Positions 1-32,959 of a DNA stretch of 64,000 nucleotides are shown piece by piece. Each line of letters begins with the position of its first letter. Positions within the stretch are counted from its first letter, which is position 1. The stretch is from Auanema rhodensis. Lineage: Eukaryota > Animalia > Nematoda. Under the pieces are notes generated by a model. The model did not search any database. It was not told where the DNA came from and saw nothing but the letters and a program-made list of their open reading frames with translations. A program made the translations under genes and the position numbers. The stretch covers positions 13,082,001 to 13,146,000 of the forward strand of contig OZ059900.1 of NCBI GenBank assembly GCA_964057225.1, in the 5' to 3' direction.

Positions 1-95
1 TTGCACACTCATGGTGTGCTTTCCAAAATGTATTTCCAACTCAGAAGTTCTCTGGTTAGATTGAGATACTACCTCTAACTTTGGGTAATTAAACC
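1..95 (-). ncRNA. SL1: SL RNA gene copy 1 with a 23-nt exon (extra A: GGTTTAATTACCCAAAGTTAGAG)
   Basis: The plus strand has AACTTTGGG instead of AACTTGGG. This is unique to this copy and could be a homopolymer sequencing error. Confidence 0.7.
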
Positions 96-292
96 AAATC
101 TATTCAGGAATCTTATGAACTGTTCTAGCCTATCGCCGTATAAGTGATCAGTGTACAAAGCTATACAAAGCTATACAAAGCTTTATCCGGTCAAACTATA
201 ATGTAAAAGACGCGTCATGTTCATATTCAAATTTGTTTTGCTTTGGCATCTATAGGGTCATATAATCATACTAAGGCAGACAGTTTTCAATA

Positions 293-386
293 TTGCACAC
301 TCATGGTGTGCTTTCCAAAATGTATTTCCAACTCAGAAGTTCTCTGGTTAGATTGAGATACTACCTCTAACTTGGGTAATTAAACC
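293..386 (-). ncRNA. SL1: Representative SL1-like SL RNA gene (monomer 2); exon 386-365, donor GT 364-363, Sm site 321-315, stem-loop III 311-295
   Basis: Stem I: AUUACC/GGUAGU spans the donor. Stem II: UCUAAC-CAGAG/UUCUG-A-GUUGGA. Sm site: AUUUUGG. Stem III: GCACAC-CAUGA-GUGUGC. The 3' end is approximate. Confidence 0.92.
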
Positions 387-420
387 AAATCTATTCAGGA
401 AACTTATGAACTGTTCTAGC

Positions 421-456
421 CTATCGCCGTATAAGTGATCAGTGTACAAAGCTATA
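421..456 (-). promoter_or_regulatory. Putative snRNA-type proximal sequence element region (about -35 to -70) upstream of the SL RNA start; repeated in every monomer
   Basis: Positional inference: SL RNA genes use snRNA-type (SNAPc/PSE) promoters at about this distance. The GC-rich TACGGCGATAG segment stands out in an AT-rich spacer. Exact element boundaries cannot be determined by eye. Confidence 0.35.
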
Positions 457-474
457 CAAAGCTATACAAAGCTT
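445..474. repeat. Internal 10-bp direct repeat (TACAAAGCTA)n, 3 copies here; 2, 3 or 4 copies per monomer
   Basis: TACAAAGCTA TACAAAGCTA TACAAAGCTT. Its copy number explains the 281/291/301-bp classes. Four-copy forms lie at 47866-47905, 50716-50755 and 57841-57880. Confidence 0.97.
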
Positions 475-3400
475 TATCCGGTCAAACTATAATGTAAAAG
501 ACGCGTCATGTTCATATTCAAATTTGTTTTGCTTTGGCATCTATAGGGTCATATAATCATACTAAGGCAGACAGTTTTCAATATTGCACACTCATGGTGT
601 GCTTTCCAAAATGTATTTCCAACTCAGAAGTTCTCTGGTTAGATTGAGATACTACCTCTAACTTGGGTAATTAAACCAAATCTATTCAGGAAACTTATGA
701 ACTGTTCTAGCCTATCGCCGTATAAGTGATCAGTGTACAAAGCTATACAAAGCTATACAAAGCTTTATCCGGTCAAACTATAATGTAAAAGACGCGTCAT
801 GTTCATATTCAAATTTGTTTTGCTTTGGCATCTATAGGGTCATATAATCATACTAAGGCAGACAGTTTTCAATATTGCACACTCATGGTGTGCTTTCCAA
901 AATGTATTTCCAACTCAGAAGTTCTCTGGTTAGATTGAGATACTACCTCTAACTTGGGTAATTAAACCAAATCTATTCAGGAAACTTATGAACTGTTCTA
1001 GCCTATCGCCGTATAAGTGATCAGTGTACAAAGCTATACAAAGCTATACAAAGCTTTATCCGGTCAAACTATAATGTAAAAGACGCGTCATGTTCATATT
1101 CAAATTTGTTTTGCTTTGGCATCTATAGGGTCATATAATCATACTAAGGCAGACAGTTTTCAATATTGCACACTCATGGTGTGCTTTCCAAAATGTATTT
1201 CCAACTCAGAAGTTCTCTGGTTAGATTGAGATACTACCTCTAACTTGGGTAATTAAACCAAATCTATTCAGGAAACTTATGAACTGTTCTAGCCTATCGC
1301 CGTATAAGTGATCAGTGTACAAAGCTATACAAAGCTATACAAAGCTTTATCCGGTCAAACTATAATGTAAAAGACGCGTCATGTTCATATTCAAATTTGT
1401 TTTGCTTTGGCATCTATAGGGTCATATAATCATACTAAGGCAGACAGTTTTCAATATTGCACACTCATGGTGTGCTTTCCAAAATGTATTTCCAACTCAG
1501 AAGTTCTCTGGTTAGATTGAGATACTACCTCTAACTTGGGTAATTAAACCAAATCTATTCAGGAAACTTATGAACTGTTCTAGCCTATCGCCGTATAAGT
1601 GATCAGTGTACAAAGCTATACAAAGCTATACAAAGCTTTATCCGGTCAAACTATAATGTAAAAGACGCGTCATGTTCATATTCAAATTTGTTTTGCTTTG
1701 GCATCTATAGGGTCATATAATCATACTAAGGCAGACAGTTTTCAATATTGCACACTCATGGTGTGCTTTCCAAAATGTATTTCCAACTCAGAAGTTCTCT
1801 GGTTAGATTGAGATACTACCTCTAACTTGGGTAATTAAACCAAATCTATTCAGGAAACTTATGAACTGTTCTAGCCTATCGCCGTATAAGTGATCAGTGT
1901 ACAAAGCTATACAAAGCTATACAAAGCTTTATCCGGTCAAACTATAATGTAAAAGACGCGTCATGTTCATATTCAAATTTGTTTTGCTTTGGCATCTATA
2001 GGGTCATATAATCATACTAAGGCAGACAGTTTTCAATATTGCACACTCATGGTGTGCTTTCCAAAATGTATTTCCAACTCAGAAGTTCTCTGGTTAGATT
2101 GAGATACTACCTCTAACTTGGGTAATTAAACCAAATCTATTCAGGAAACTTATGAACTGTTCTAGCCTATCGCCGTATAAGTGATCAGTGTACAAAGCTA
2201 TACAAAGCTATACAAAGCTTTATCCGGTCAAACTATAATGTAAAAGACGCGTCATGTTCATATTCAAATTTGTTTTGCTTTGGCATCTATAGGGTCATAT
2301 AATCATACTAAGGCAGACAGTTTTCAATATTGCACACTCATGGTGTGCTTTCCAAAATGTATTTCCAACTCAGAAGTTCTCTGGTTAGATTGAGATACTA
2401 CCTCTAACTTGGGTAATTAAACCAAATCTATTCAGGAAACTTATGAACTGTTCTAGCCTATCGCCGTATAAGTGATCAGTGTACAAAGCTATACAAAGCT
2501 ATACAAAGCTTTATCCGGTCAAACTATAATGTAAAAGACGCGTCATGTTCATATTCAAATTTGTTTTGCTTTGGCATCTATAGGGTCATATAATCATACT
2601 AAGGCAGACAGTTTTCAATATTGCACACTCATGGTGTGCTTTCCAAAATGTATTTCCAACTCAGAAGTTCTCTGGTTAGATTGAGATACTACCTCTAACT
2701 TGGGTAATTAAACCAAATCTATTCAGGAAACTTATGAACTGTTCTAGCCTATCGCCGTATAAGTGATCAGTGTACAAAGCTATACAAAGCTATACAAAGC
2801 TTTATCCGGTCAAACTATAATGTAAAAGACGCGTCATGTTCATGATCAAATTCATATTGCTTAATCATCTATAGTGTCATATAATCATACTAAGACAGAC
2901 AGTTTTCAATATTGCACACTCATGGTGTGCTTTCCAAAATGTATTTCCAACTCAGAAGTTCTCTGGTTAGATTGAGATACTACCTCTAACTTGGGTAATT
3001 AAACCAAATCTATTCAGGAAACTTATGAACTGTTCTAGCCTATCGCCGTATATGTGATCAGTGTACAAAGATATACAAAGCTTTATCAGGTCAAACTATA
3101 ATGTAAAAGACGTGTCATGTTCATATTCAAATTTGTTTTGCTTTGGCATCTATAGTGTCATATAATCATACTAAGACAGACAGTTTTCAATATTGCACAC
3201 TCATGGTGTGCTTTCCAAAATGTATTTCCAACTCAGAAGTTCTCTGGTTAGATTGAGATACTACCTCTAACTTGGGTAATTAAACCAAATCTATTCAGGA
3301 AACTTATGAACTGTTCTAGCCTATCGCCGTATATGTGATCAGTGTACAAAGATATACAAAGCTTTATCCGGTCAAACTATAATGTAAAAGACGCGTCATG

Positions 3401-6400
3401 TTCATATTCAAATTTGTTTTGCTTTGGCATCTATAGTGTCATATAATCATACTAAGACAGACAGTTTTCAATATTGCACACTCATGGTGTGCTTTCCAAA
3501 ATGTATTTCCAACTCAGAAGTTCTCTGGTTAGATTGAGATACTACCTCTAACTTGGGTAATTAAACCAAATCTATTCAGGAAACTTATAAACTGTTCTAG
3601 CCTATCGCCGTATATGTGATCAGTGTACAAAGATATACAAAGCTTTATCCGGTCAAACTATAATGTAAAAGACGCGTCATGTTCATATTCAAATTTGTTT
3701 TGCTTTGGCATCTATAGTGTCATATAATCATACTAAGACAGACAGTTTTCAATATTGCACACTCATGGTGTGCTTTCCAAAATGTATTTCCAACTCAGAA
3801 GTTCTCTGGTTAGATTGAGATACTACCTCTAACTTGGGTAATTAAACCAAATCTATTCAGGAAACTTATAAACTGTTCTAGCCTATCGCCGTATATGTGA
3901 TCAGTGTACAAAGCTATACAAAGCTATACAAAGCTTTATCCGGTCAAACTATAATGTAAAAGACGCGTCATGTTCATATTCAAATTCATTTTGCTTTAGC
4001 ATCTGTAGTGTTATATAATCATACTAAGACAGACAGTTTTCAATATTGCACACTCGTGGTGTGCTTTCCAAAATGTATTTCCAACTCAGAAGTTCTCTGG
4101 TTAGATTGAGATACTACCTCTAACTTGGGTAATTAAACCAAATCTATTCAGGAAACTTATGAACTGTTCTAGCCTATCGCCGTATATGTGATCAGTGTAC
4201 AAAGCTATACAAAGCTATACAAAGCTTTATCCGGTGAAACTATAATGTAAAAGACGCGTCATGTTCATATTCAAATTTGTTTTGCTTTGGCATCTATAGT
4301 GTCATATAATCATACTAAGACAGACAGTTTTCAATATTGCACACTCATGGTGTGCTTTCCAAAATGTATTTCCAACTCAGAAGTTCTCTGGTTAGATTGA
4401 GATACTACCTCTAACTTGGGTAATTAAACCAAATCTATTCAGGAAACTTATGAACTGTTCTAGCCTATCGCCGTATATGTGATCAGTGTACAAAGCTATA
4501 CAAAGCTATACAAAGTTTTATCCTGTCAAACTATAATGTAAAAGACGCGTAATGTTCATGATCAAATTCATATTGCTTAATCATCTATAGTGTCATATAA
4601 TCATACTAAGACAGACAGTTTTCAATATTGCACACTCATGGTGTGCTTTCCAAAATGTATTTCCAACTCAGAAGTTCTCTGGTTAGATTGAGATACTACC
4701 TCTAACTTGGGTAATTAAACCAAATCTATTCAGGAAACTTATAAACTGTTCTAGCCTATCGCCGTATATGTGATCAGTGTACAAAGCTATACAAAGCTAT
4801 ACAAAGCTTTATCCGGTGAAACTATAATGTAAAAGACGCGTCATGGTCATATTCAAATTTGTTTTGCTTTGGCATCTATAGTGTCATATAATCATACTAA
4901 GACAGACAGTTTTCAATATTGCACACTCATGGTGTGCTTTCCAAAATGTATTTCCAACTCAGAAGTTCTCTGGTTAGATTGAGATACTACCTCTAACTTG
5001 GGTAATTAAACCAAATCTATTCAGGAAACTTATGAACTGTTCTAGCCTATCGCCGTATATGTGATCAGTGTACAAAGATATACAAAGCTTTATCCGGTCA
5101 AACTATAATGTAAAAGACGCGTCATGTTCATATTCAAATTTGTTTTGCTTTGGCATCTATAGTGTCATATAATCATACTAAGACAGACAGTTTTCAATAT
5201 TGCACACTCGTGGTGTGCTTTCCAAAATGTATTTCCAACTCAGAAGTTCTCTGGTTAGATTGAGATACTACCTCTAACTTGGGTAATTAAACCAAATCTA
5301 TTCAGGAAACTTATAAACTGTTCTAGCCTATCGCCGTATATGTGATCAGTGTACAAAGCTATACAAAGCTATACAAAGCTTTATCCGGTCAAACTATAAT
5401 GTAAAAGACGCGTCATGTTCATATTCAAATTCATTTTGCTTTAGCATCTGTAGTGTTATATAATCATACTAAGACAGACAGTTTTCAATATTGCACACTC
5501 GTGGTGTGCTTTCCAAAATGTATTTCCAACTCAGAAGTTCTCTGGTTAGATTGAGATACTACCTCTAACTTGGGTAATTAAACCAAATCTATTCAGGAAA
5601 CTTATAAACTGTTCTAGCCTATCGCCGTATATGTGATCAGTGTACAAAGCTATACAAAGCTATACAAAGCTTTATCCGGTCAAACTATAATGTAAAAGAC
5701 GTGTCATGTTCATATTCAAATTTGTTTTGCTTTGGCATCTATAGTGTCAGATAATCATACTAAGACAGACAGTTTTCAATATTGCACACTCATGGTGTGC
5801 TTTCCAAAATGTATTTCCAACTCAGAAGTTCTCTGGTTAGATTGAGATACTACCTCTAACTTGGGTAATTAAACCAAATCTATTCAGGAAACTTATGAAC
5901 TGTTCTAGCCTATCGCCGTATATGTGATCAGTGTACAAAGATATACAAAGCTTTATCCGGTCAAACTATAATGTAAAAGACGCGTCATGTTCATATTCAA
6001 ATTTGTTTTGCTTTGGCATCTATAGTGTCATATAATCATACTAAGACAGACAGTTTTCAATATTGCACACTCATGGTGTGCTTTCCAAAATGTATTTCCA
6101 ACTCAGAAGTTCTCTGGTTAGATTGAGATACTACCTCTAACTTGGGTAATTAAACCAAATCTATTCAGGAAACTTATAAACTGTTCTAGCCTATCGCCGT
6201 ATATGTGATCAGTGTACAAAGCTATACAAAGCTATACAAAGCTTTATCCGGTCAAACTATAATGTAAAAGACGCGTCATGTTCATATTCAAATTCATTTT
6301 GCTTTAGCATCTGTAGTGTTATATAATCATACTAAGACAGACAGTTTTCAATATTGCACACTCGTGGTGTGCTTTCCAAAATGTATTTCCAACTCAGAAG

Positions 6401-9400
6401 TTCTCTGGTTAGATTGAGATACTACCTCTAACTTGGGTAATTAAACCAAATCTATTCAGGAAACTTATGAACTGTTCTAGCCTATCGCCGTATATGTGAT
6501 CAGTGTACAAAGCTATACAAAGCTATACAAAGCTTTATCCGGTGAAACTATAATGTAAAAGACGCGTCATGTTCATATTCAAATTTGTTTTGCTTTGGCA
6601 TCTATAGTGTCATATAATCATACTAAGACAGACAGTTTTCAATATTGCACACTCATGGTGTGCTTTCCAAAATGTATTTCCAACTCAGAAGTTCTCTGGT
6701 TAGATTGAGATACTACCTCTAACTTGGGTAATTAAACCAAATCTATTCAGGAAACTTATGAACTGTTCTAGCCTATCGCCGAATATGTGATCAGTGTACA
6801 AAGCTATACAAAGCTTTATCCGGTCAAACTATAATGTAAAAGACGCGTCATGTTCATATTCAAATTTGTTTTGCTTTGGCATCTATAGTGTCATATAATC
6901 ATACTAAGACAGACAGTTTTCAATATTGCACACTCATGGTGTGCTTTCCAAAATGTATTTCCAACTCAGAAGTTCTCTGGTTAGATTGAGATACTACCTC
7001 TAACTTGGGTAATTAAACCATATCTATTCAGGAAACTTATGAACTGTTCTAGCCTATCGCCGTATATATGATCAGTGTACAAAGCTATACAAAGCTATAC
7101 AAAGCTTTATCCGGTGAAACTATAATGTAAAAGACGCGTCATGGTCATATTCAAATTTGTTTTGCTTTGGCATCTATAGTGTCATATAATCATACTAAGA
7201 CAGACAGTTTTCAATATTGCACACTCGTGGTGTGCTTTCCAAAATGTATTTCCAACTCAGAAGTTCTCTGGTTAGATTGAGATACTACCTCTAACTTGGG
7301 TAATTAAACCATATCTATTCAGGAAACTTATGAACTGTTCTAGCCTATCGCCGTATATATGATCAGTGTACAAAGCTATACAAAGCTATACAAAGCTTTA
7401 TCCGGTGAAACTATAATGTAAAAGACGCGTCATGGTCATATTCAAATTTGTTTTGCTTTGGCATCTATAGTGTCATATAATCATACTAAGACAGACAGTT
7501 TTCAATATTGCACACTCATGGTGTGCTTTCCAAAATGTATTTCCAACTCAGAAGTTCTCTGGTTAGATTGAGATACTACCTCTAACTTGGGTAATTAAAC
7601 CAAATCTATTCAGGAAACTTATAAACTGTTCTAGCCTATCGCGGTATATGTGATCAGTGTACAAAGCTATACAAAGCTTTATCCGGTCAAACTATAATGT
7701 AAAAGACGCGTCATGTTCATATTCAAATTTGTTTTGCTTTGGCATCTATAGTGTCATATAATCATACTAAGACAGACAGTTTTCAATATTGCACACTCAT
7801 GGTGTGCTTTCCAAAATGTATTTCCAACTCAGAAGTTCTCTGGTTAGATTGAGATACTACCTCTAACTTGGGTAATTAAACCATATCTATTCAGGAAACT
7901 TATGAACTGTTCTAGCCTATCGCCGTATATATGATCAGTGTACAAAGCTATACAAAGCTATACAAAGCTTTATCCGGTGAAACTATAATGTAAAAGACGC
8001 GTCATGGTCATATTCAAATTTGTTTTGCTTTGGCATCTATAGTGTCATATAATCATACTAAGACAGACAGTTTTCAATATTGCACACTCATGGTGTGCTT
8101 TCCAAAATGTATTTCCAACTCAGAAGTTCTCTGGTTAGATTGAGATACTACCTCTAACTTGGGTAATTAAACCAAATCTATTCAGGAAACTTATGAACTG
8201 TTCTAGCCTATCGCCGTATATGTGATCAGTGTACAAAGATATACAAAGCTTTATCCGGTCAAACTATAATGTAAAAGACGCGTCATGTTCATATTCAAAT
8301 TTGTTTTGCTTTGGCATCTATAGTGTCATATAATCATACTAAGACAGACAGTTTTCAATATTGCACACTCATGGTGTGCTTTCCAAAATGTATTTCCAAC
8401 TCAGAAGTTCTCTGGTTAGATTGAGATACTACCTCTAACTTGGGTAATTAAACCAAATCTATTCAGGAAACTTATAAACTGTTCTAGCCTATCGCCGTAT
8501 ATGTGATCAGTGTACAAAGCTATACAAAGCTATACAAAGCTTTATCCGGTCAAACTATAATGTAAAAGACGCGTCATGTTCATATTCAAATTCATTTTGC
8601 TTTAGCATCTGTAGTGTTATATAATCATACTAAGACAGACAGTTTTCAATATTGCACACTCGTGGTGTGCTTTCCAAAATGTATTTCCAACTCAGAAGTT
8701 CTCTGGTTAGATTGAGATACTACCTCTAACTTGGGTAATTAAACCAAATCTATTCAGGAAACTTATAAACTGTTCTAGCCTATCGCCGTATATGTGATCA
8801 GTGTACAAAGCTATACAAAGCTATACAAAGCTTTATCCGGTCAAACTATAATGTAAAAGACGCGTCATGTTCATATTCAAATTCATTTTGCTTTAGCATC
8901 TGTAGTGTTATATAATCATACTAAGACAGACAGTTTTCAATATTGCACACTCGTGGTGTGCTTTCCAAAATGTATTTCCAACTCAGAAGTTCTCTGGTTA
9001 GATTGAGATACTACCTCTAACTTGGGTAATTAAACCAAATCTATTCAGGAAACTTATGAACTGTTCTAGCCTATCGCCGTATATGTGATCAGTGTACAAA
9101 GATATACAAAGCTTTATCAGGTCAAACTATAATGTAAAAGACGTGTCATGTTCATATTCAAATTTGTTTTGCTTTGGCATCTATAGTGTCATATAATCAT
9201 ACTAAGACAGACAGTTTTCAATATTGCACACTCATGGTGTGCTTTCCAAAATGTATTTCCAACTCAGAAGTTCTCTGGTTAGATTGAGATACTACCTCTA
9301 ACTTGGGTAATTAAACCAAATCTATTCAGGAAACTTATAAACTGTTCTAGCCTATCGCCGTATATGTGATCAGTGTACAAAGCTATACAAAGCTATACAA

Positions 9401-10939
9401 AGCTTTATCCGGTCAAACTATAATGTAAAAGACGCGTCATGTTCATATTCAAATTCATTTTGCTTTAGCATCTGTAGTGTTATATAATCATACTAAGACA
9501 GACAGTTTTCAATATTGCACACTCGTGGTGTGCTTTCCAAAATGTATTTCCAACTCAGAAGTTCTCTGGTTAGATTGAGATACTACCTCTAACTTGGGTA
9601 ATTAAACCAAATCTATTCAGGAAACTTATGAACTGTTCTAGCCTATCGCCGTATATGTGATCAGTGTACAAAGATATACAAAGCTTTATCAGGTCAAACT
9701 ATAATGTAAAAGACGTGTCATGTTCATATTCAAATTTGTTTTGCTTTGGCATCTATAGTGTCATATAATCATACTAAGACAGACAGTTTTCAATATTGCA
9801 CACTCATGGTGTGCTTTCCAAAATGTATTTCCAACTCAGAAGTTCTCTGGTTAGATTGAGATACTACCTCTAACTTGGGTAATTAAACCAAATCTATTCA
9901 GGAAACTTATGAACTGTTCTAGCCTATCGCCGAATATGTGATCAGTGTACAAAGCTATACAAAGCTTTATCCGGTCAAACTATAATGTAAAAGACGCGTC
10001 ATGTTCATATTCAAATTTGTTTTGCTTTGGCATCTATAGTGTCATATAATCATACTAAGACAGACAGTTTTCAATATTGCACACTCATGGTGTGCTTTCC
10101 AAAATGTATTTCCAACTCAGAAGTTCTCTGGTTAGATTGAGATACTACCTCTAACTTGGGTAATTAAACCAAATCTATTCAGGAAACTTATAAACTGTTC
10201 TAGCCTATCGCCGTATATGTGATCAGTGTACAAAGCTATACAAAGCTATACAAAGCTTTATCCGGTCAAACTATAATGTAAAAGACGCGTCATGTTCATA
10301 TTCAAATTCATTTTGCTTTAGCATCTGTAGTGTCATATAATCATACTAAGACAGACAGTTTTCAATATTGCACACTCATGGTGTGCTTTCCAAAATGTAT
10401 TTCCAACTCAGAAGTTCTCTGGTTAGATTGAGATACTACCTCTAACTTGGGTAATTAAACCAAATCTATTCAGGAAACTTATGAACTGTTCTAGCCTATC
10501 GCCGTATATGTGATCAGTGTACAAAGCTATACAAAGCTATACAAAGCTTTATCCGGTGAAACTATAATGTAAAAGACGCGTCATGTTCATATTCAAATTT
10601 GTTTTGCTTTGGCATCTGTAGTGTCATATAATCATACTAAGACAGACAGTTTTCAATATTGCACACTCATGGTGTGCTTTCCAAAATGTATTTCCAACTC
10701 AGAAGTTCTCTGGTTAGATTGAGATACTACCTCTAACTTGGGTAATTAAACCAAATCTATTCAGGAAACTTATGAACTGTTCTAGCCTATCGCCGAATAT
10801 GTGATCAGTGTACAAAGCTATACAAAGCTTTATCCGGTCAAACTATAATGTAAAAGACGCGTCATGTTCATATTCAAATTTGTTTTGCTTTGGCATCTAT
10901 AGTGTTATATAATCATACTAAGACAGACAGTTTTCAATA

Positions 10940-13809
10940 TTGCACACTCATGGTGTGCTTTCCAAAATGTATTTCCAACTCAGAAGTTCTCTGGTTAGAT
11001 TGAGATACTACCTCTAACTTGGGTAATTAAACCAAATCTATTCAGGAAACTTATGAACTGTTCTAGCCTATCGCCGTATATGTGATCAGTGTACAAAGCT
11101 ATACAAAGCTATACAAAGTTTTATCCTGTCAAACTATAATGTAAAAGACGCGTAATGTTCATGATCAAATTCATATTGCTTAATCATCTATAGTGTCATA
11201 TAATCATACTAAGACAGACAGTTTTCAATATTGCACACTCATGGTGTGCTTTCCAAAATGTATTTCCAACTCAGAAGTTCTCTGGTTAGATTGAGATACT
11301 ACCTCTAACTTGGGTAATTAAACCATATCTATTCAGGAAACTTATGAACTGTTCTAGCCTATCGCCGTATATGTGATCAGTGTACAAAGCTATACAAAGC
11401 TATACAAAGCTTTATCCGGTCAAACTATAATGTAAAAGACGCGTCATGTTCATATTCAAATTTGTTTTGCTTTGGCATCTATAGTGTCATATAATCATAC
11501 TAAGACAGACAGTTTTCAATATTGCACACTCATGGTGTGCTTTCCAAAATGTATTTCCAACTCAGAAGTTCTCTGGTTAGATTGAGATACTACCTCTAAC
11601 TTGGGTAATTAAACCATATCTATTCAGGAAACTTATGAACTGTTCTAGCCTATCGCCGTATATATGATCAGTGTACAAAGCTATACAAAGCTTTATCCGG
11701 TCAAACTATAATGTAAAAGACGCGTCATGGTCATATTCAAATTTGTTTTGCTTTGGCATCTATAGTGTCATATAATCATACTAAGACAGACAGTTTTCAA
11801 TATTGCACACTCATGGTGTGCTTTCCAAAATGTATTTCCAACTCAGAAGTTCTCTGGTTAGATTGAGATACTACCTCTAACTTGGGTAATTAAACCAAAT
11901 CTATTCAGGAAACTTATGAACTGTTCTAGCCTATCGCCGTATATGTGATCAGTGTACAAAGATATACAAAGCTTTATCCGGTCAAACTATAATGTAAAAG
12001 ACGCGTCATGTTCATATTCAAATTTGTTTTGCTTTGGCATCTATAGTGTCATATAATCATACTAAGACAGACAGTTTTCAATATTGCACACTCATGGTGT
12101 GCTTTCCAAAATGTATTTCCAACTCAGAAGTTCTCTGGTTAGATTGAGATACTACCTCTAACTTGGGTAATTAAACCAAATCTATTCAGGAAACTTATGA
12201 ACTGTTCTAGCCTATCGCCGTATATGTGATCAGTGTACAAAGCTATACAAAGCTATACAAAGTTTTATCCTGTCAAACTATAATGTAAAAGACGCGTAAT
12301 GTTCATGATCAAATTCATATTGCTTAATCATCTATAGTGTCATATAATCATACTAAGACAGACAGTTTTCAATATTGCACACTCATGGTGTGCTTTCCAA
12401 AATGTATTTCCAACTCAGAAGTTCTCTGGTTAGATTGAGATACTACCTCTAACTTGGGTAATTAAACCAAATCTATTCAGGAAACTTATGAACTGTTCTA
12501 GCCTATCGCCGTATATGTGATCAGTGTACAAAGCTATACAAAGCTATACAAAGTTTTATCCTGTCAAACTATAATGTAAAAGACGCGTAATGTTCATGAT
12601 CAAATTCATATTGCTTAATCATCTATAGTGTCATATAATCATACTAAGACAGACAGTTTTCAATATTGCACACTCATGGTGTGCTTTCCAAAATGTATTT
12701 CCAACTCAGAAGTTCTCTGGTTAGATTGAGATACTACCTCTAACTTGGGTAATTAAACCATATCTATTCAGGAAACTTATGAACTGTTCTAGCCTATCGC
12801 CGTATATGTGATCAGTGTACAAAGCTATACAAAGCTATACAAAGCTTTATCCGGTCAAACTATAATGTAAAAGACGCGTCATGTTCATATTCAAATTTGT
12901 TTTGCTTTGGCATCTATAGTGTCATATAATCATACTAAGACAGACAGTTTTCAATATTGCACACTCATGGTGTGCTTTCCAAAATGTATTTCCAACTCAG
13001 AAGTTCTCTGGTTAGATTGAGATACTACCTCTAACTTGGGTAATTAAACCATATCTATTCAGGAAACTTATGAACTGTTCTAGCCTATCGCCGTATATAT
13101 GATCAGTGTACAAAGCTATACAAAGCTTTATCCGGTCAAACTATAATGTAAAAGACGCGTCATGGTCATATTCAAATTTGTTTTGCTTTGGCATCTATAG
13201 TGTCATATAATCATACTAAGACAGACAGTTTTCAATATTGCACACTCATGGTGTGCTTTCCAAAATGTATTTCCAACTCAGAAGTTCTCTGGTTAGATTG
13301 AGATACTACCTCTAACTTGGGTAATTAAACCAAATCTATTCAGGAAACTTATGAACTGTTCTAGCCTATCGCCGTATATGTGATCAGTGTACAAAGATAT
13401 ACAAAGCTTTATCCGGTCAAACTATAATGTAAAAGACGCGTCATGTTCATATTCAAATTTGTTTTGCTTTGGCATCTATAGTGTCATATAATCATACTAA
13501 GACAGACAGTTTTCAATATTGCACACTCATGGTGTGCTTTCCAAAATGTATTTCCAACTCAGAAGTTCTCTGGTTAGATTGAGATACTACCTCTAACTTG
13601 GGTAATTAAACCAAATCTATTCAGGAAACTTATGAACTGTTCTAGCCTATCGCCGTATATGTGATCAGTGTACAAAGCTATACAAAGCTATACAAAGTTT
13701 TATCCTGTCAAACTATAATGTAAAAGACGCGTCATGTTCATATTCAAATTTGTTTTGCTTTGGCATCTATAGTGTCATATAATCATACTAAGACAGACAG
13801 TTTTCAATA
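10940..13809. repeat. Tandem duplication of a 5-monomer unit (1435 bp)
   Basis: The same order of variant monomers occurs at 10940-12374 and 12375-13809. The match breaks down within the last monomer. Confidence 0.8.
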
Positions 13810-16800
13810 TTGCACACTCATGGTGTGCTTTCCAAAATGTATTTCCAACTCAGAAGTTCTCTGGTTAGATTGAGATACTACCTCTAACTTGGGTAATTAA
13901 ACCAAATCTATTCAGGAAACTTATGAACTGTTCTAGCCTATCGCCGTATATATGATCAGTGTACAAAGCTATACAAAGCTTTATCCGGTCAAACTATAAT
14001 GTAAAAGACGCGTCATGGTCATATTCAAATTTGTTTTGCTTTGGCATCTATAGTGTCATATAATCATACTAAGACAGACAGTTTTCAATATTGCACACTC
14101 ATGGTGTGCTTTCCAAAATGTATTTCCAACTCAGAAGTTCTCTGGTTAGATTGAGATACTACCTCTAACTTGGGTAATTAAACCAAATCTATTCAGGAAA
14201 CTTATGAACTGTTCTAGCCTATCGCCGTATATGTGATCAGTGTACAAAGATATACAAAGCTTTATCCGGTCAAACTATAATGTAAAAGACGCGTCATGTT
14301 CATATTCAAATTTGTTTTGCTTTGGCATCTATAGTGTCATATAATCATACTAAGACAGACAGTTTTCAATATTGCACACTCATGGTGTGCTTTCCAAAAT
14401 GTATTTCCAACTCAGAAGTTCTCTGGTTAGATTGAGATACTACCTCTAACTTGGGTAATTAAACCAAATCTATTCAGGAAACTTATGAACTGTTCTAGCC
14501 TATCGCCGTATATGTGATCAGTGTACAAAGATATACAAAGCTTTATCCGGTCAAACTATAATGTAAAAGACGCGTCATGTTCATATTCAAATTTGTTTTG
14601 CTTTGGCATCTATAGTGTCATATAATCATACTAAGACAGACAGTTTTCAATATTGCACACTCATGGTGTGCTTTCCAAAATGTATTTCCAACTCAGAAGT
14701 TCTCTGGTTAGATTGAGATACTACCTCTAACTTGGGTAATTAAACCAAATCTATTCAGGAAACTTATGAACTGTTCTAGCCTATCGCCGTATATATGATC
14801 AGTGTACAAAGCTATACAAAGCTTTATCCGGTCAAACTATAATGTAAAAGACGCGTCATGGTCATATTCAAATTTGTTTTGCTTTGGCATCTATAGTGTC
14901 ATATAATCATACTAAGACAGACAGTTTTCAATATTGCACACTCATGGTGTGCTTTCCAAAATGTATTTCCAACTCAGAAGTTCTCTGGTTAGATTGAGAT
15001 ACTACCTCTAACTTGGGTAATTAAACCAAATCTATTCAGGAAACTTATGAACTGTTCTAGCCTATCGCCGTATATGTGATCAGTGTACAAAGATATACAA
15101 AGCTTTATCCGGTCAAACTATAATGTAAAAGACGCGTCATGTTCATATTCAAATTTGTTTTGCTTTGGCATCTATAGTGTCATATAATCATACTAAGACA
15201 GACAGTTTTCAATATTGCACACTCATGGTGTGCTTTCCAAAATGTATTTCCAACTCAGAAGTTCTCTGGTTAGATTGAGATACTACCTCTAACTTGGGTA
15301 ATTAAACCAAATCTATTCAGGAAACTTATAAACTGTTCTAGCCTATCGCCGTATATGTGATCAGTGTACAAAGCTATACAAAGCTATACAAAGCTTTATC
15401 CGGTCAAACTATAATGTAAAAGACGCGTCATGTTCATATTCAAATTCATTTTGCTTTAGCATCTGTAGTGTTATATAATCATACTAAGACAGACAGTTTT
15501 CAATATTGCACACTCGTGGTGTGCTTTCCAAAATGTATTTCCAACTCAGAAGTTCTCTGGTTAGATTGAGATACTACCTCTAACTTGGGTAATTAAACCA
15601 AATCTATTCAGGAAACTTATGAACTGTTCTAGCCTATCGCCGTATATATGATCAGTGTACAAAGCTATACAAAGCTATACAAAGCTTTATCCGGTGAAAC
15701 TATAATGTAAAAGACGCGTCATGGTCATATTCAAATTTGTTTTGCTTTGGCATCTATAGTGTCATATAATCATACTAAGACAGACAGTTTTCAATATTGC
15801 ACACTCATGGTGTGCTTTCCAAAATGTATTTCCAACTCAGAAGTTCTCTGGTTAGATTGAGATACTACCTCTAACTTGGGTAATTAAACCAAATCTATTC
15901 AGGAAACTTATAAACTGTTCTAGCCTATCGCCGTATATGTGATCAGTGTACAAAGCTATACAAAGCTATACAAAGCTTTATCCGGTCAAACTATAATGTA
16001 AAAGACGCGTCATGTTCATATTCAAATTCATTTTGCTTTAGCATCTGTAGTGTTATATAATCATACTAAGACAGACAGTTTTCAATATTGCACACTCGTG
16101 GTGTGCTTTCCAAAATGTATTTCCAACTCAGAAGTTCTCTGGTTAGATTGAGATACTACCTCTAACTTGGGTAATTAAACCAAATCTATTCAGGAAACTT
16201 ATGAACTGTTCTAGCCTATCGCCGTATATATGATCAGTGTACAAAGCTATACAAAGCTATACAAAGCTTTATCCGGTGAAACTATAATGTAAAAGACGCG
16301 TCATGGTCATATTCAAATTTGTTTTGCTTTGGCATCTATAGTGTCATATAATCATACTAAGACAGACAGTTTTCAATATTGCACACTCATGGTGTGCTTT
16401 CCAAAATGTATTTCCAACTCAGAAGTTCTCTGGTTAGATTGAGATACTACCTCTAACTTGGGTAATTAAACCAAATCTATTCAGGAAACTTATGAACTGT
16501 TCTAGCCTATCGCCGTATATGTGATCAGTGTACAAAGATATACAAAGCTTTATCCGGTCAAACTATAATGTAAAAGACGCGTCATGTTCATATTCAAATT
16601 TGTTTTGCTTTGGCATCTATAGTGTCATATAATCATACTAAGACAGACAGTTTTCAATATTGCACACTCATGGTGTGCTTTCCAAAATGTATTTCCAACT
16701 CAGAAGTTCTCTGGTTAGAATGAGATACTACCTCTAACTTGGGTAATTAAACCAAATCTATTCAGGAAACTTATGAACTGTTGTAACCTATCGCCGTATA

Positions 16801-18385
16801 AGTGATCAGTGTACAAAGCTATACAAAGCTTTATCCAGTCAAACTATAATGTAAAAGACGCGTCATGTTCATATTCAAATTTGTTTTGCTTTGGCATCTA
16901 TAGTGTCATATAATCATACTAAGACAGACAGTTTTCAATATTGCACACTCATGGTGTGCTTTCCAAAATGTATTTCCAACTCAGAAGTTCTCTGGTTAGA
17001 ATGAGATACTACCTCTAACTTGGGTAATTAAACCAAATCTATTCAGGAAACTTATGAACTGTTGTAGCCTATCGCCGTATATGTGATCAGTGTACAAAGC
17101 TATACAAAGCTATACAAAGCTTTATCCGGTCAAACTATAATGTAAAAGACGCGTCATGTTCATATTCAAATTCATTTTGCTTTAGCATCTGTAGTGTTAT
17201 ATAATCATACTAAGACAGACAGTTTTCAATATTGCACACTCGTGGTGTGCTTTCCAAAATGTATTTCCAACTCAGAAGTTCTCTGGTTAGATTGAGATAC
17301 TACCTCTAACTTGGGTAATTAAACCAAATCTATTCAGGAAACTTATGAACTGTTCTAGCCTATCGCCGTATATATGATCAGTGTACAAAGCTATACAAAG
17401 CTATACAAAGCTTTATCCGGTGAAACTATAATGTAAAAGACGCGTCATGGTCATATTCAAATTTGTTTTGCTTTGGCATCTATAGTGTCATATAATCATA
17501 CTAAGACAGACAGTTTTCAATATTGCACACTCATGGTGTGCTTTCCAAAATGTATTTCCAACTCAGAAGTTCTCTGGTTAGATTGAGATACTACCTCTAA
17601 CTTGGGTAATTAAACCAAATCTATTCAGGAAACTTATGAACTGTTCTAGCCTATCGCCGTATATGTGATCAGTGTACAAAGATATACAAAGCTTTATCCG
17701 GTCAAACTATAATGTAAAAGACGCGTCATGTTCATATTCAAATTTGTTTTGCTTTGGCATCTATAGTGTCATATAATCATACTAAGACAGACAGTTTTCA
17801 ATATTGCACACTCATGGTGTGCTTTCCAAAATGTATTTCCAACTCAGAAGTTCTCTGGTTAGATTGAGATACTACCTCTAACTTGGGTAATTAAACCAAA
17901 TCTATTCAGGAAACTTATAAACTGTTCTAGCCTATCGCCGTATATGTGATCAGTGTACAAAGCTATACAAAGCTATACAAAGCTTTATCCGGTCAAACTA
18001 TAATGTAAAAGACGCGTCATGTTCATATTCAAATTCATTTTGCTTTAGCATCTGTAGTGTTATATAATCATACTAAGACAGACAGTTTTCAATATTGCAC
18101 ACTCGTGGTGTGCTTTCCAAAATGTATTTCCAACTCAGAAGTTCTCTGGCTAGATTGAGATACTACCTCTAACTTGGGTAATTAAACCAAATCTATTCAG
18201 GAAACTTATGAACTGTTCTAGCCTATCGCCGTATATGTGATCAGTGTACAAAGCTATACAAAGCTATACAAAGCTTTATCCGGTGAAACTATAATGTAAA
18301 AGACGCGTCATGTTCATATTCAAATTTGTTTTGCTTTGGCATCTATAGTGTCATATAATCATACTAAGACAGACAGTTTTCAATA

Positions 18386-18479
18386 TTGCACACTCATGGT
18401 GTGCTTTCCAAAATGTATTTCCAACTCAGAAGTTCTCTGGTTAGATTGAGATACTACCTCTAACTTGGGTTTTTAAACC
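18386..18479 (-). ncRNA. SL RNA gene with variant exon GGTTTAAAAACCCAAGTTAGAG
   Basis: The plus strand reads GGGTTTTTAAACC at 18467-18479. Single copy. Confidence 0.8.
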
Positions 18480-21400
18480 AAATCTATTCAGGAAACTTAT
18501 GAACTGTTCTAGCCTATCGCCGAATATGTGATCAGTGTACAAAGCTATACAAAGCTTTATCCGGTCAAACTATAATGTAAAAGACGCGTCATGTTCATAT
18601 TCAAATTTGTTTTGCTTTGGCATCTATAGTGTCATATAATCATACTAAGACAGACAGTTTTCAATATTGCACACTCGTGGTGTGCTTTCCAAAATGTATT
18701 TCCAACTCAGAAGTTCTCTGGTTAGATTGAGATACTACCTCTAACTTGGGTAATTAAACCAAATCTATTCAGGAAACTTATGAACTGTTCTAGCCTATCG
18801 CCGTATATGTGATCAGTGTACAAAGCTATACAAAGCTATACAAAGCTTTATCCGGTGAAACTATAATGTAAAAGACGCGTCATGGTCATATTCAAATTTG
18901 TTTTGCTTTGGCATCTATAGTGTCATATAATCATACTAAGACAGACAGTTTTCAATATTGCACACTCATGGTGTGCTTTCCAAAATGTATTTCCAACTCA
19001 GAAGTTCTCTGGTTAGATTGAGATACTACCTCTAACTTGGGTAATTAAACCAAATCTATTCAGGAAACTTATGAACTGTTCTAGCCTATCGCCGTATATG
19101 TGATCAGTGTACAAAGCTATACAAAGCTATACAAAGTTTTATCCTGTCAAACTATAATGTAAAAGACGCGTCATGTTCATGATCAAATTCATATTGCTTA
19201 ATCATCTATAGTGTCATATAATCATACTAAGACAGACAGTTTTCAATATTGCACACTCATGGTGTGCTTTCCAAAATGTATTTCCAACTCAGAAGTTCTC
19301 TGGTTAGATTGAGATACTACCTCTAACTTGGGTAATTAAACCAAATCTATTCAGGAAACTTATGAACTGTTCTAGCCTATCGCCGTATATGTGATCAGTG
19401 TACAAAGCTATACAAAGCTTTATCGGGTCAAACTATAATGTAAAAGACGCGTCATGTTCATATTCAAATTTGTTTTGCTTTGGCATCTATAGTGTCATAT
19501 AATCATACTAAGACAGACAGTTTTCAATATTGCACACTCATGGTGTGCTTTCCAAAATGTATTTCCAACTCAGAAGTTCTCTGGTTAGATTGAGATACTA
19601 CCTCTAACTTGGGTAATTAAACCAAATCTATTCAGGAAACTTATGAACTGTTCTAGCCTATCGCCGTATATGTGATCAGTGTACAAAGCTATACAAAGCT
19701 ATACAAAGTTTTATCCTGTCAAACTATAATGTAAAAGACGCGTCATGTTCATGATCAAATTCATATTGCTTAATCATCTATAGTGTCATATAATCATACT
19801 AAGACAGACAGTTTTCAATATTGCACACTCATGGTGTGCTTTCCAAAATGTATTTCCAACTCAGAAGTTCTCTGGTTAGATTGAGATACTACCTCTAACT
19901 TGGGTAATTAAACCAAATCTATTCAGGAAACTTATGAACTGTTCTAGCCTATCGCCGTATATGTGATCAGTGTACAAAGCTATACAAAGCTATACAAAGT
20001 TTTATCCTGTCAAACTATAATGTAAAAGACGCGTCATGTTCATATTCAAATTTGTTTTGCTTTGGCATCTATAGTGTCATATAATCATACTAAGACAGAC
20101 AGTTTTCAATATTGCACACTCATGGTGTGCTTTCCAAAATGTATTTCCAACTCAGAAGTTCTCTGGTTAGATTGAGATACTACCTCTAACTTGGGTAATT
20201 AAACCAAATCTATTCAGGAAACTTATGAACTGTTCTAGCCTATCGCCGTATATGTGATCAGTGTACAAAGCTATACAAAGCTATACAAAGTTTTATCCTG
20301 TCAAACTATAATGTAAAAGACGCGTCATGTTCATATTCAAATTTGTTTTGCTTTGGCATCTATAGTGTCATATAATCATACTAAGACAGACAGTTTTCAA
20401 TATTGCACACTCATGGTGTGCTTTCCAAAATGTATTTCCAACTCAGAAGTTCTCTGGTTAGATTGAGATACTACCTCTAACTTGGGTAATTAAACCAAAT
20501 CTATTCAGGAAACTTATGAACTGTTCTAGCCTATCGCCGTATATGTGATCAGTGTACAAAGCTATACAAAGCTATACAAAGTTTTATCCTGTCAAACTAT
20601 AATGTAAAAGACGCGTCATGTTCATATTCAAATTTGTTTTGCTTTGGCATCTATAGTGTCATATAATCATACTAAGACAGACAGTTTTCAATATTGCACA
20701 CTCATGGTGTGCTTTCCAAAATGTATTTCCAACTCAGAAGTTCTCTGGTTAGATTGAGATACTACCTCTAACTTGGGTAATTAAACCAAATCTATTCAGG
20801 AAACTTATGAACTGTTCTAGCCTATCGCCGTATATGTGATCAGTGTACAAAGCTATACAAAGCTATACAAAGTTTTATCCTGTCAAACTATAATGTAAAA
20901 GACGCGTCATGTTCATGATCAAATTCATATTGCTTAATCATCTATAGTGTCATATAATCATACTAAGACAGACAGTTTTCAATATTGCACACTCATGGTG
21001 TGCTTTCCAAAATGTATTTCCAACTCAGAAGTTCTCTGGTTAGATTGAGATACTACCTCTAACTTGGGTAATTAAACCAAATCTATTCAGGAAACTTATG
21101 AACTGTTCTAGCCTATCGCCGTATATGTGATCAGTGTACAAAGCTATACAAAGCTTTATCCGGTCAAACTATAATGTAAAAGACGCGTCATGTTCATATT
21201 CAAATTTGTTTTGCTTTGGCATCTATAGTGTGATATAATCATACTAAGACAGACAGTTTTCAATATTGCACACTCATGGTGTGCTTTCCAAAATGTATTT
21301 CCAACTCAGAAGTTCTCTGGTTAGATTGAGATACTACCTCTAACTTGGGTAATTAAACCAAATCTATTCAGGAAACTTATGAACTGTTCTAGCCTATCGC

Positions 21401-24115
21401 CGTATATGTGATCAGTGTACAAAGCTATACAAAGCTATACAAAGCTTTATCCGGTCAAACTATAATGTAAAAGACGCGTCATGTTCATATTCAAATTTGT
21501 TTTGCTTTGGCATCTATAGTGTGATATAATCATACTAAGACAGACAGTTTTCAATATTGCACACTCATGGTGTGCTTTCCAAAATGTATTTCCAACTCAG
21601 AAGTTCTCTGGTTAGATTGAGATACTACCTCTAACTTGGGTAATTAAACCAAATCTATTCAGGAAACTTATAAACTGTTCTAGCCTATCGCCGTATATGT
21701 GATCAGTGTACAAAGCTATACAAAGCTATACAAAGCTTTATCTGGTCAAACTATAATGTAAAAGACGCGTCATGTTCATATTCAAATTTGTTTTGCTTTG
21801 GCATCTATAGTGTCATATAATCATACTAAGACAGACAATTTTCAATATTGCACACTCATGGTGTGCTTTCCAAAATGTATTTCCAACTCAGAAGTTCTCT
21901 GGTTAGATTGAGATACTACCTCTAACTTGGGTAATTAAACCAAATCTATTCAGGAAACTTATGAACTGTTCTAGCCTATCGCCGTATATGTGATCAGTGT
22001 ACAAAGCTATACAAAGCTTTATCCGGTCAAACTATAATGTAAAAGACGCGTCATGTTCATATTCAAATTTGTTTTGCTTTGGCATCTATAGTGTGATATA
22101 ATCATACTAAGACAGACAGTTTTCAATATTGCACACTCATGGTGTGCTTTCCAAAATGTATTTCCAACTCAGAAGTTCTCTGGTTAGATTGAGATACTAC
22201 CTCTAACTTGGGTAATTAAACCAAATCTATTCAGGAAACTTATGAACTGTTCTAGCCTATCGCCGTATATGTGATCAGTGTACAAAGCTATACAAAGCTT
22301 TATCCGGTCAAACTATAATGTAAAAGACGCGTCATGTTCATATTCAAATTTGTTTTGCTTTGGCATCTATAGTGTCATATAATCATACTAAGACAGACAG
22401 TTTTTAATATTGCACACTCATGGTGTGCTTTCCAAAATGTATTTCCAACTCAGAAGTTCTCTGGTTAGATTGAGATACTACCTCTAACTTGGGTAATTAA
22501 ACCAAATCTATTCAGGAAACTTATGAACTGTTCTAGCCTATCGCCGTATATGTGATCAGTGTACAAAGCTATACAAAGCTTTATCCGGTCAAACTATAAT
22601 GTAAAAGACGCGTCATGTTCATATTCAAATTTGTTTTGTTTTGGCATCTATAGTGTCATATAATCATACTAAGACAGACAATTTTCAATATTGCACACTC
22701 ATGGTGTGCTTTCCAAAATGTATTTCCAACTCAGAAGTTCTCTGGTTAGATTGAGATACTACCTCTAACTTGGGTAATTAAACCAAATCTATTCAGGAAA
22801 CTTATGAACTGTTCTAGCCTATCGCCGTATATGTGATCAGTGTACAAAGCTATACAAAGCTTTATCCGGTCAAACTATAATGTAAAAGACGCGTCATGTT
22901 CATATTCAAATTTGTTTTGCTTTGGCATCTATAGTGTGATATAATCATACTAAGACAGACAGTTTTCAATATTGCACACTCATGGTGTGCTTTCCAAAAT
23001 GTATTTCCAACTCAGAAGTTCTCTGGTTAGATTGAGATACTACCTCTAACTTGGGTAATTAAACCAAATCTATTCAGGAAACTTATGAACTGTTCTAGCC
23101 TATCGCCGTATATGTGATCAGTGTACAAAGCTATACAAAGCTTTATCCGGTCAAACTATAATGTAAAAGACGCGTCATGTTCATATTCAAATTTGTTTTG
23201 CTTTGGCATCTATAGTGTCATATAATCATACTAAGACAGACAGTTTTTAATATTGCACACTCATGGTGTGCTTTCCAAAATGTATTTCCAACTCAGAAGT
23301 TCTCTGGTTAGATTGAGATACTACCTCTAACTTGGGTAATTAAACCAAATCTATTCAGGAAACTTATGAACTGTTCTAGCCTATCGCCGTATATGTGATC
23401 AGTGTACAAAGCTATACAAAGCTATACAAAGCTTTATCCGGTGAAACTATAATGTAAAAGACGCGTCATGGTCATATTCAAATTTGTTTTGCTTTGGCAT
23501 CTATAGTGTCATATAATCATACTAAGACAGACAGTTTTCAATATTGCACACTCATGGTGTGCTTTCCAAAATGTATTTCCAACTCAGAAGTTCTCTGGTT
23601 AGATTGAGATACTACCTCTAACTTGGGTAATTAAACCAAATCTATTCAGGAAACTTATGAACTGTTCTAGCCTATCGCCGTATATGTGATCAGTGTACAA
23701 AGATATACAAAGCTTTATCCGGTCAAACTATAATGTAAAAGACGCGTCATGTTCATATTCAAATTTGTTTTGCTTTGGCATCTATAGTGTCATATAATCA
23801 TACTAAGACAGACAGTTTTCAATATTGCACACTCATGGTGTGCTTTCCAAAATGTATTTCCAACTCAGAAGTTCTCTGGTTAGATTGAGATACTACCTCT
23901 AACTTGGGTAATTAAACCAAATCTATTCAGGAAACTTATGAACTGTTCTAGCCTATCGCCGTATATGTGATCAGTGTACAAAGCTATACAAAGCTATACA
24001 AAGCTTTATCCGGTGAAACTATAATGTAAAAGACGCGTCATGTTCATATTCAAATTTGTTTTGCTTTGGCATCTATAGTGTCATATAATCATACTAAGAC
24101 AGACAGTTTTCAATA

Positions 24116-24209
24116 TTGCACACTCATGGTGTGCTTTCCAAAATGTATTTCCAACTCAGAAGTTCTCTGGTTAGATTGAGATACTACCTCTAACTTGGGT
24201 ATTTAAACC
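24116..24209 (-). ncRNA. SL RNA gene with variant exon GGTTTAAATACCCAAGTTAGAG (also in monomers starting 25261, 25542, 26687, 29537, 32388)
   Basis: The plus strand reads GGGTATTTAAACC in six copies. Confidence 0.85.
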
Positions 24210-27200: not shown

Positions 27201-28684
27201 ATATTGCTTAATCATCTATAGTGTCATATAATCATACTAAGACAGACAGTTTTCAATATTGCACACTCATGGTGTGCTTTCCAAAATGTATTTCCAACTC
27301 AGAAGTTCTCTGGTTAGATTGAGATACTACCTCTAACTTGGGTAATTAAACCATATCTATTCAGGAAACTTATGAACTGTTCTAGCCTATCGCCGTATAT
27401 CTGATCAGTGTACAAAGCTATACAAAGCTATACAAAGTTTTATCCTGTCAAACTATAATGTAAAAGACGCGTCATGGTCATATTCAAATTTGTTTTGCTT
27501 TGGCATCTATAGTGATCATATAATCATACTAAGACAGACAGTTTTCAATATTGCACACTCATGGTGTGCTTTCCAAAATGTATTTCCAACTCAGAAGTTC
27601 TCTGGTTAGATTGAGATACTACCTCTAACTTGGGTAATTAAACCAAATCTATTCAGGAAACTTATGAACTGTTCTAGCCTATCGCCGAATATGTGATCAG
27701 TGTACAAAGCTATACAAAGCTTTATCCGGTGAAACTATAATGTAAAAGACGCGTCATGTTCATATTCAAATTTGTTTTGCTTTGGCATCTATAGTGTCAT
27801 ATAATCATACTAAGACAGACAGTTTTCAATATTGCACACTCGTGGTGTGCTTTCCAAAATGTATTTCCAACTCAGAAGTTCTCTGGTTAGATTGAGATAC
27901 TACCTCTAACTTGGGTAATTAAACCAAATCTATTCAGGAAACTTATGAACTGTTCTAGCCTATCGCCGTATATGTGATCAGTGTACAAAGCTATACAAAG
28001 CTATACAAAGCTTTATCCGGTGAAACTATAATGTAAAAGACGCGTCATGTTCATATTCAAATTTGTTTTGCTTTGGCATCTATAGTGTCATATAATCATA
28101 CTAAGACAGACAGTTTTCAATATTGCACACTCATGGTGTGCTTTCCAAAATGTATTTCCAACTCAGAAGTTCTCTGGTTAGATTGAGATACTACCTCTAA
28201 CTTGGGTAATTAAACCAAATCTATTCAGGAAACTTATGAACTGTTCTAGCCTATCGCCGAATATGTGATCAGTGTACAAAGCTATACAAAGCTTTATCCG
28301 GTGAAACTATAATGTAAAAGACGCGTCATGTTCATATTCAAATTTGTTTTGCTTTGGCATCTATAGTGTCATATAATCATACTAAGACAGACAGTTTTCA
28401 ATATTGCACACTCGTGGTGTGCTTTCCAAAATGTATTTCCAACTCAGAAGTTCTCTGGTTAGATTGAGATACTACCTCTAACTTGGGTAATTAAACCAAA
28501 TCTATTCAGGAAACTTATGAATTGTTCTAGCCTATCGCCGTATATGTGATCAGGGTACAAAGCTATACAAAGCTTTAACAAGTCAAACTATAATGTAAAA
28601 GACGCGTCATGTTCATATTCAAATTTGTTTTGTTTTGGCATCTATAGTGTCATATAATCATACTAAGACAGACAGTTTTCAATA

Positions 28685-28778
28685 TTGCACACTCATGGTG
28701 TGCTTTCCAAAATGTATTTTCAACTCAGAAGTTCTCTTTTTAGATTGAGATACTACCTCTAACTTGGGTAATTAAACC
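28685..28778 (-). pseudogene. SL RNA copy with disrupted stem-loop II
   Basis: On the plus strand CTCTGGTTAG becomes CTCTTTTTAG and TTTCC becomes TTTTC, removing three C-G pairs of the predicted stem II. Loss of function is inferred. Confidence 0.45.
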
Positions 28779-32668: not shown

Positions 32669-32762
32669 TTGCACACTCATGGTGTGCTTTCCAAAATGTA
32701 TTTCCAACTCAGAAGTTCTCTGGTTAGATTGAGATACTATCTCTAACTTGGGTAATTAAACC
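32669..32762 (-). pseudogene. SL RNA copy with dead splice donor (GT to AT)
   Basis: A plus-strand C to T at 32740 (TACTATCTCTAAC) changes the first intron base from G to A. Confidence 0.7.
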
Positions 32763-32959
32763 AAATCTATTCAGGAAACTTATGAACTGTTCTAGCCTAT
32801 CGCCGTATATGTGATCAGTGTACAAAGCTATACAAAGCTATACAAAGTTTTATCCTGTCAAACTATAATGTAAAAGACGCGTCATGTTCATGATCAAATT
32901 CATATTGCTTAATCATCTATAGTGTCATATAATCATACTAAGACAGACAGTTTTCAATA

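Follow-up and report, generated by a model that had tools for sequence, protein, structure and literature searches.

Few short sequences of nematodes are as conserved as the spliced leader SL1, and primers and read filters made from it are routine for the capture of full-length cDNA and for the quantification of trans-splicing. In the genome of Auanema rhodensis (assembly of 181 Mb in 112 contigs) we found a long tandem array of genes whose leader departs from SL1 by a single base, A instead of U at position 19 (U19A). This locus raises the question of whether the U19A genes have replaced canonical SL1, whether they supply a second leader alongside it, or whether they are the units of an inert satellite. 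We analysed a stretch of 64,000 nt on contig C8 (C8:13082001-13146000, the window) together with the remainder of the genome and public sequence runs.

The U19A array on contig C8

The window is a slice of one large array. Tandem Repeats Finder reported a single array from 1 to 64000 with a period of 281, 224 copies and 96% matches. On the minus strand the window (1..64000) holds 225 head-to-tail units of 281, 291 or 301 bp. The three lengths arise because a 10-bp spacer microrepeat, TACAAAGCTA (445..473 in the example unit, minus strand), is present two, three or four times. The unit lengths form local higher-order patterns, with runs of 281-281-291 and 281-281-281-291 in one part of the window and long runs of 291-bp units in another; units of 301 bp are rare. 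Such higher-order patterns are the usual mark of unequal exchange.

The 22-mer GGTTTAATTACCCAAGTTAGAG at 365-386 on the minus strand is the SL1 leader with A for U (T in the DNA) at position 19. Allowing up to three mismatches it has 223 matches in the window, with an expectation of 0 from shuffled sequences, and among the matches listed (the first 200 of the 223) nearly all are exact. By anchoring on the Sm site 225 gene copies could be collected. All 225 carry A19 and none ends in the canonical ...AAGTTTGAG, so that the fixation of A19 and the absence of the canonical leader, which the preliminary description had claimed, hold for the whole window. The exact leader followed by the donor GTAG was found in 211 of the 223 copies. 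The exceptions comprise T8A in six copies, T9A in three, A14G in one, one double change, one copy with a donor G-to-A exchange and one with an extra A. In the latter copy (73..95, minus strand) the insertion of one base gives the leader end ...CCCAAAGTTAGAG and the Rfam score is only 24.9 bits. The donor mutant reads GAG/AUAG (32739..32762, minus strand; leader at 32741-32762; C8:13114740-13114759).

An example copy of the complete gene, 95 nt in length (292..386, minus strand), matches the Rfam SL1 family RF00198 over its full length, with 38 bits and E = 2e-4, under the gathering score of 75; the other copies likewise align from end to end. The parts of the gene can be assigned as follows, all on the minus strand. 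The 22-nt leader exon GGUUUAAUUACCCAAGUUAGAG occupies 365..386, and its position 19 (A) is base 368 of the window; the 3' end of the U19A leader is ...CCCAAGUUAGAG (UUAGAG), the canonical counterpart being ...UUUGAG. The GU splice donor (363..364) adjoins the leader (GAG/GUAGUA) and is intact in 222 of 223 window copies. The Sm-binding site AUUUUGG (315..321, context ACAUUUUGGAAAG) is of the AAUUUUGG type; it lies between stem-loops II and III, is single-stranded in that it remains unpaired in the predicted folds, and reads ATTTTGGAA in 225/225 copies. Upon folding, the 3' stem-loop III (295..311, GCACAC-CAUGA-GUGUGC) gave a perfect 6-bp hairpin.

The exact U19A leader occurs 2,090 times in the genome (1,315 forward, 775 reverse), and among the matches listed all lie on contig C8 at about 12.92-13.58 Mb. 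The array thus extends over roughly 0.6 Mb and has about 2,100 intact-looking genes. Copies with a mutated donor are spread from 12.966 to 13.508 Mb of this contig. Minus-strand genes fill the window to 13.146 Mb and plus-strand genes start from 13.160 Mb. The orientation therefore flips within C8:13146000-13160039, and transcription of the two arms of the array would diverge.

Canonical SL1 and SL2 genes and known leader variants

Canonical leaders are encoded in the same genome. The exact sequence GGUUUAAUUACCCAAGUUUGAG was found 1,267 times genome-wide, in arrays on contig C3 with 252-bp units at about 6.74 Mb and with 340-bp units at about 14.13-14.15 Mb, and these genes possess the donor, the Sm site and the promoter motif described below. 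A lineage-specific replacement of SL1, which had been considered from the window, is refuted by this finding. The U19A leader had also been called dominant. This is correct for gene number (2,090 against 1,267 exact leaders), a comparison of gene counts and not of RNA. Other one-mismatch variants of SL1 amount to only about 94 genome-wide, and with a total of more than 3,300 SL1-type genes the U19A genes make up about 62%.

The alternative proposal of the preliminary description, a second leader class, is borne out on the DNA level. The U19A RNA body is 76-77% identical to the 252-bp canonical gene over the gene of about 100 nt, and the spacers are unalignable. The U19A genes are a paralogous SL1-type gene family coexisting with canonical SL1 and SL2 genes. 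Against Rfam SL1 the canonical-leader genes reach 51-59 bits; since these genes also remain below the gathering score of 75, the threshold is undecisive for membership here.

Four SL2 genes of the Rfam SL2 type (RF00199; leader GGTTTTAACCCAGTATCTCAAG; 47-76 bits) are present in the genome, which identifies the animal as a rhabditine. The ranking of a protein search with exon 3 of rpa-0 agrees with this placement: the best named matches were Caenorhabditis sp. 36 and Auanema with 85%, Necator with 81% and Pristionchus with 80% (the query was this single exon, the exons being unjoined). SL1 leaders follow a spacing rule with five bases between GGTTT and CCCA, six bases from CCCA to the 3' AG, and a GAG end (PMC1657053), and the U19A leader follows it in each of these points. 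SL2 leaders are recognised by three to four bases between GGTWW and CCCA, an AAG end and an SL2-type third stem-loop. An SL2 identity of the U19A leader is thus ruled out by its SL1 spacing and its GAG end. Compared with the canonical 22-nt leader it matches in 21 of 22 letters, A19 being fixed in 225 copies.

The 340-bp units on C3 (14145424-14148443) represent a third SL1-type family, with the canonical leader and a different RNA body. Their stem III is GCUCUC/GAGAGC, one copy has the donor GT changed to TT, and the middle of the body (AACCAGAA...UUCUGUGUU) resembles the U19A body more closely than it does that of the 252-bp canonical family.

When compared with known systems, the U19A genes resemble the canonical SL1 genes (RF00198) of the C. 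elegans sls-1 / rrs-1 cluster in 21/22 leader letters and in the adjoining GU donor, and canonical SL1 RNA genes in the AAUUUUGG-like Sm site, the three stem-loops and the tandem multi-copy arrangement. They differ in having A and not U at leader position 19, in the Rfam score (38 against 51-59 bits for the canonical genes here) and in copy number, about 2,100 against the roughly 110 SL1 gene copies of C. elegans. Unlike the C. elegans cluster the U19A unit is without a 5S rRNA gene; SL1 genes unlinked to 5S are already known from Oscheius tipulae (PMC8022731) and Pristionchus pacificus (PMC4138322).

SL1 variants have been found before. In P. pacificus Ppa-SL1 variants occupy 11/187 loci (PMC4138322), single-substitution variants occur as single clones in Ascaris, Brugia and Nippostrongylus (PMC4138322, PMC7986045, PMC1657053), and for SL1M of Meloidogyne javanica, a one-base variant, differential use was reported (as cited in PMC1657053). 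Like U19A, variants of the Ppa-SL1, SL1M and Ascaris type differ from SL1 by one or few bases and have their own genes beside the canonical leader. In P. pacificus, Ascaris, Brugia and Nippostrongylus, however, the variants are minor, whereas U19A outnumbers the canonical leader, has its own mega-array and has a distinct RNA body. Heterodera glycines prefers a species-specific spliced leader over SL1 (PMC6362198) and resembles our case in that a non-canonical leader is possibly the main one and canonical SL1 is retained. But the preference in H. glycines rests on evidence of RNA use, whereas the excess of U19A is one of gene number. Moreover, H. glycines belongs to the Tylenchina and is without SL2, and the U19A genome is that of a rhabditine in which the SL2 genes are normal. 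Already described are single-base variants of SL1 encoded by separate genes, SL1 genes unlinked to 5S, and a species that prefers a non-canonical leader.

No full text of the literature searched contains the exact U19A 22-mer, and the two matches to the 13 letters of its 3' part were both unrelated. As a leader end, ...AAGTTAGAG (TTAGAG) was absent from the supplement of PMC1657053 and from the available part of the supplement of PMC7986045. These searches do not contradict that the leader is not yet described.

RNA structure, promoter-like motif and variation among copies

An RNAalifold consensus was calculated over the three SL1-type families of this genome. In this consensus the three canonical genes have A-U at pair 14-19 but the U19A gene has A-A, so that the loss of the A14-U19 pair anticipated from the leader sequence is predicted here as well; yet the Rfam SL1 consensus places position 19 in a loop. 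The stem I pairs spanning the donor (C11/C12-G23/G22, A10-U24 and U9-A25) are predicted to be kept in all families, and the pairing over the donor (9-25, 10-24, 11-23, 12-22) would accordingly be intact, as had been supposed. In stem III the U19A gene has A-U at pair 79/91 where the canonical genes have U-A, a compensatory change, and the 340-bp family likewise has a change on both sides of stem III (A-U to U-A). That stem III has been kept despite the divergence of the RNA body suggests that the lineage evolved under structural constraint, as far as can be judged from predicted folds. The minimum-energy fold of the U19A RNA contains an alternative helix with A19 paired to U52; it was given no weight.

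For the mature U19A and canonical leaders the same cap-proximal stem of 3 bp is predicted (G1-U3 with A10-C12). A stem of this kind is required for the translation of SL mRNAs (PMC3203607). As position 19 is situated outside this stem, the change should be tolerated. From the work of Ferguson and Rothman in 1999 and of Xie and Hirsh in 1998, SL1 of C. elegans is reportedly tolerant of sequence changes in vivo. The change indeed introduces the UAG triplet that had been pointed out, but the canonical UGA at 19-21 is lost through it as well, and an AUG is found in neither leader.

Upstream of the gene the motif TATACGGCG (425..433, minus strand) is located at -47 to -39, starting 47 nt before the first leader base. 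A related motif is found at -47/-48 in front of the canonical SL1 gene and each of the four SL2 genes, off by one base in one SL2 gene and in the 340-bp canonical family. In other sequence of the same genome the motif had two matches in 106,696 positions (about 2e-5 per position). We take the motif for a putative proximal element of the snRNA type (PSE). In about 50 of 223 window units (22%) TATACGGCG is replaced by TATTCGGCG, whereby the core TACG becomes TTCG. The exchanged base (upstream region -62 to -30, e.g. 416-448) does not vary among the canonical SL1 and SL2 genes. The units with TATTCGGCG may be weakened copies.

For an assessment of variation 302 units were compared; 222 of them belong to the window, and the other 80 were taken from eight loci far off in the array. 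A variant with a frequency of at least 5% is present at only 1 of 95 sites of the gene, compared with 16 of 128 sites of the spacer (Fisher p = 0.0014), and the single site in the gene is a position of the stem III loop. The gene has a nucleotide diversity of 0.008, the spacer one of 0.028. In the frequency of rare variants the two parts hardly differ (27/95 sites of the gene, 40/128 of the spacer). These data show past constraint on the gene and single copies without visible present selection, the latter being expected for an array so large, whether active or not.

Leader use and alternative readings of the array

A search of public runs with the array sequence yielded four small runs of one organism (X1-X4) containing 17-70% of the sampled words; four other runs were also matched. 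X1-X3 contain 27-70% of the sampled unit words and are RNA-seq of A. rhodensis: GT..AG introns are skipped with no other letters, and the intergenic depth is zero. Array words in RNA runs fit transcription, but a trace of genomic DNA would, for a unit present in about 2,000 copies, explain them just as well.

As a target for leader detection we used a locus on contig C7 (C7:6605565-6608340, covered by L050:1-2760 and L084:1485-3038) where three highly expressed genes, rpa-0 (P0), tct-1 (TCTP) and rpl-43 (RPL37A), are arranged head to tail. About 165-175 nt separate a stop codon from the following start codon, and each downstream start has a UUUAG or CUUAG acceptor in front of it. The arrangement resembles the conserved rpa-0/tct-1 operon described in PMC1657053, extended by a third gene. 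RNA contigs (Logan) of X1, X2, X3 and a further run, X5, were placed on the rpa-0/tct-1 part (L084); in the SL RNAs themselves the leader is followed by an intron reading GTAGTA or GTACTT. On the contigs of X1-X3 no leader of any type was seen at the rpa-0 acceptor (L084:1492/1493) or at the tct-1 acceptor (2705/2706), and the contigs of X5 gave no match to the operon. The rpa-0 contigs of X1-X3 have their start at 1567-1571 or, where a fold-back is present, at 1491, and cis-splicing is visible in them; they confirm the rpa-0 introns and place the 3' end of rpa-0 near L084:2609-2620. In X2 a 154-nt contig with high depth connects 1491, where the AG preceding the rpa-0 exon lies, with 1567-1600 read from the other strand; it is probably a snap-back artefact of cDNA synthesis. 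Because the downstream gene tct-1 is expected to be trans-spliced, the blank at the acceptors most likely reflects the loss of leader tips from assembled contigs and not which leader is used.

In each of five rpa-0 cDNA contigs of related soil nematodes, with 86-88% identity in P0, the canonical ...CAAGTTTGAG is joined to the same 5' UTR. As position 19 is visible in these contigs, the relatives use canonical SL1 on rpa-0. The best match of rpa-0 exon 3 among cDNA contigs was 88%, i.e., the contigs stem from relatives and not from the species itself. A search for leader-bearing retrocopies (leader without a following G) gave 13 places for U19A, all of them donor-mutated copies inside the C8 array, and nine places for the canonical leader, all inside the C3 arrays, and hence no signal for either leader.

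In our preferred reading, to which we assign a probability of roughly 0.6, the U19A genes are active and mRNAs receive the variant leader, as well as canonical SL1, by splicing. The GU donor, the Sm site, the 3' hairpin with its compensatory change and the shared motif at -47 make the genes look functional. The family has been amplified into a satellite-like array on C8; according to this reading its genes would be transcribed like other SL and snRNA genes, the RNA would be assembled into an Sm snRNP, and the leader would be donated to mRNA 5' ends by trans-splicing beside canonical SL1, probably interchangeably. The canonical rpa-0 leaders of the relatives, the changed promoter core in 22% of the units, the undepleted rare variants and the lower Rfam SL1 score relative to the canonical paralogues (38 against 51-59 bits) count against activity, and so do the absence of any ...UUAGAG junction to an mRNA from the X1-X3 operon contigs and the chance that the array words stem from traces of DNA.

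Several of these observations would also be accommodated if the array were an inert satellite, in which a variant SL unit was amplified by unequal exchange and is largely silent, practically every SL1 leader comes from the C3 arrays, and the gene features look intact only through the youth of the array and homogenisation. We consider this unlikely, though it is the alternative that survives best. The satellite-like organisation with its runs of aaB and aaaB unit patterns speaks for it, as do the two observations on rare variants and on the promoter core and the total of more than 3,300 SL1-type genes, far in excess of the C. elegans number. The canonical SL1 on rpa-0 of the relatives and the X1-X3 operon contigs without the variant leader (or any leader) point in the same direction. 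What speaks against inertness is the strong depletion of common variants in the gene, the intact Sm site (225/225) and donor (222/223), and a diverged body that keeps its stems by compensatory change and the motif at its exact distance, which suggests a gene that had worked for a long time, before the amplification or while it proceeded.

Should the U19A genes be active, the RNA might form a specialised second SL1 snRNP whose leader is restricted to a distinct set of mRNAs or to a stage or tissue such as the germline. Its body and promoter flank differ from the canonical ones, so different regulation or partners would be possible, and there is the precedent of the differentially used SL1M of M. 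javanica (as cited in PMC1657053). But ordinary SL2 genes already serve the resolution of operons and the core promoter motif is the same as that of canonical SL1, and on these grounds we regard such a specialisation as improbable. Similarly doubtful is the far-reaching view that U19A RNA constitutes a functionally distinct SL1 snRNP which is the main donor by gene dosage, has its own regulation or mRNA clientele (germline- or stage-specific, for instance) and demonstrates that a supposedly invariant SL1 can be superseded within the Rhabditina. Finally, a replacement of canonical SL1 or an assembly artefact inflating one variant could be suspected from a window without any canonical copy, but is extremely improbable given the 1,267 exact canonical leaders elsewhere in the genome, the array words in independent public runs of the same species and the structured internal variation (three unit lengths, site variants).

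If the U19A leader is used, SL1 primers and filters would undercount or miss a large share of the transcripts in this species, the primer mismatch lying four bases from the 3' end. Position 19 would then be free to change in a rhabditine that retains the canonical leader. This freedom bears on the cause of leader conservation, which could be an internal promoter element or a translation signal; the leader is said to be an internal promoter element in Ascaris (Hannon and coworkers, 1990). If the leader is unused, the array would represent a small-RNA gene turning into a satellite.

Sequences similar to the leader were also encountered outside nematode data. An exact 20-mer search of JGI metagenome and metatranscriptome contigs gave 13 matches, which were rejected as they all belong to one unrelated repeat family (L015-L027). 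In this repeat the 20 letters equal U19A leader positions 3-22, are preceded by AT and not by GG, and are embedded in conserved flanks of the repeat's own; no GT follows the match and there is no Rfam match. The likeness to the U19A leader is most likely due to chance.
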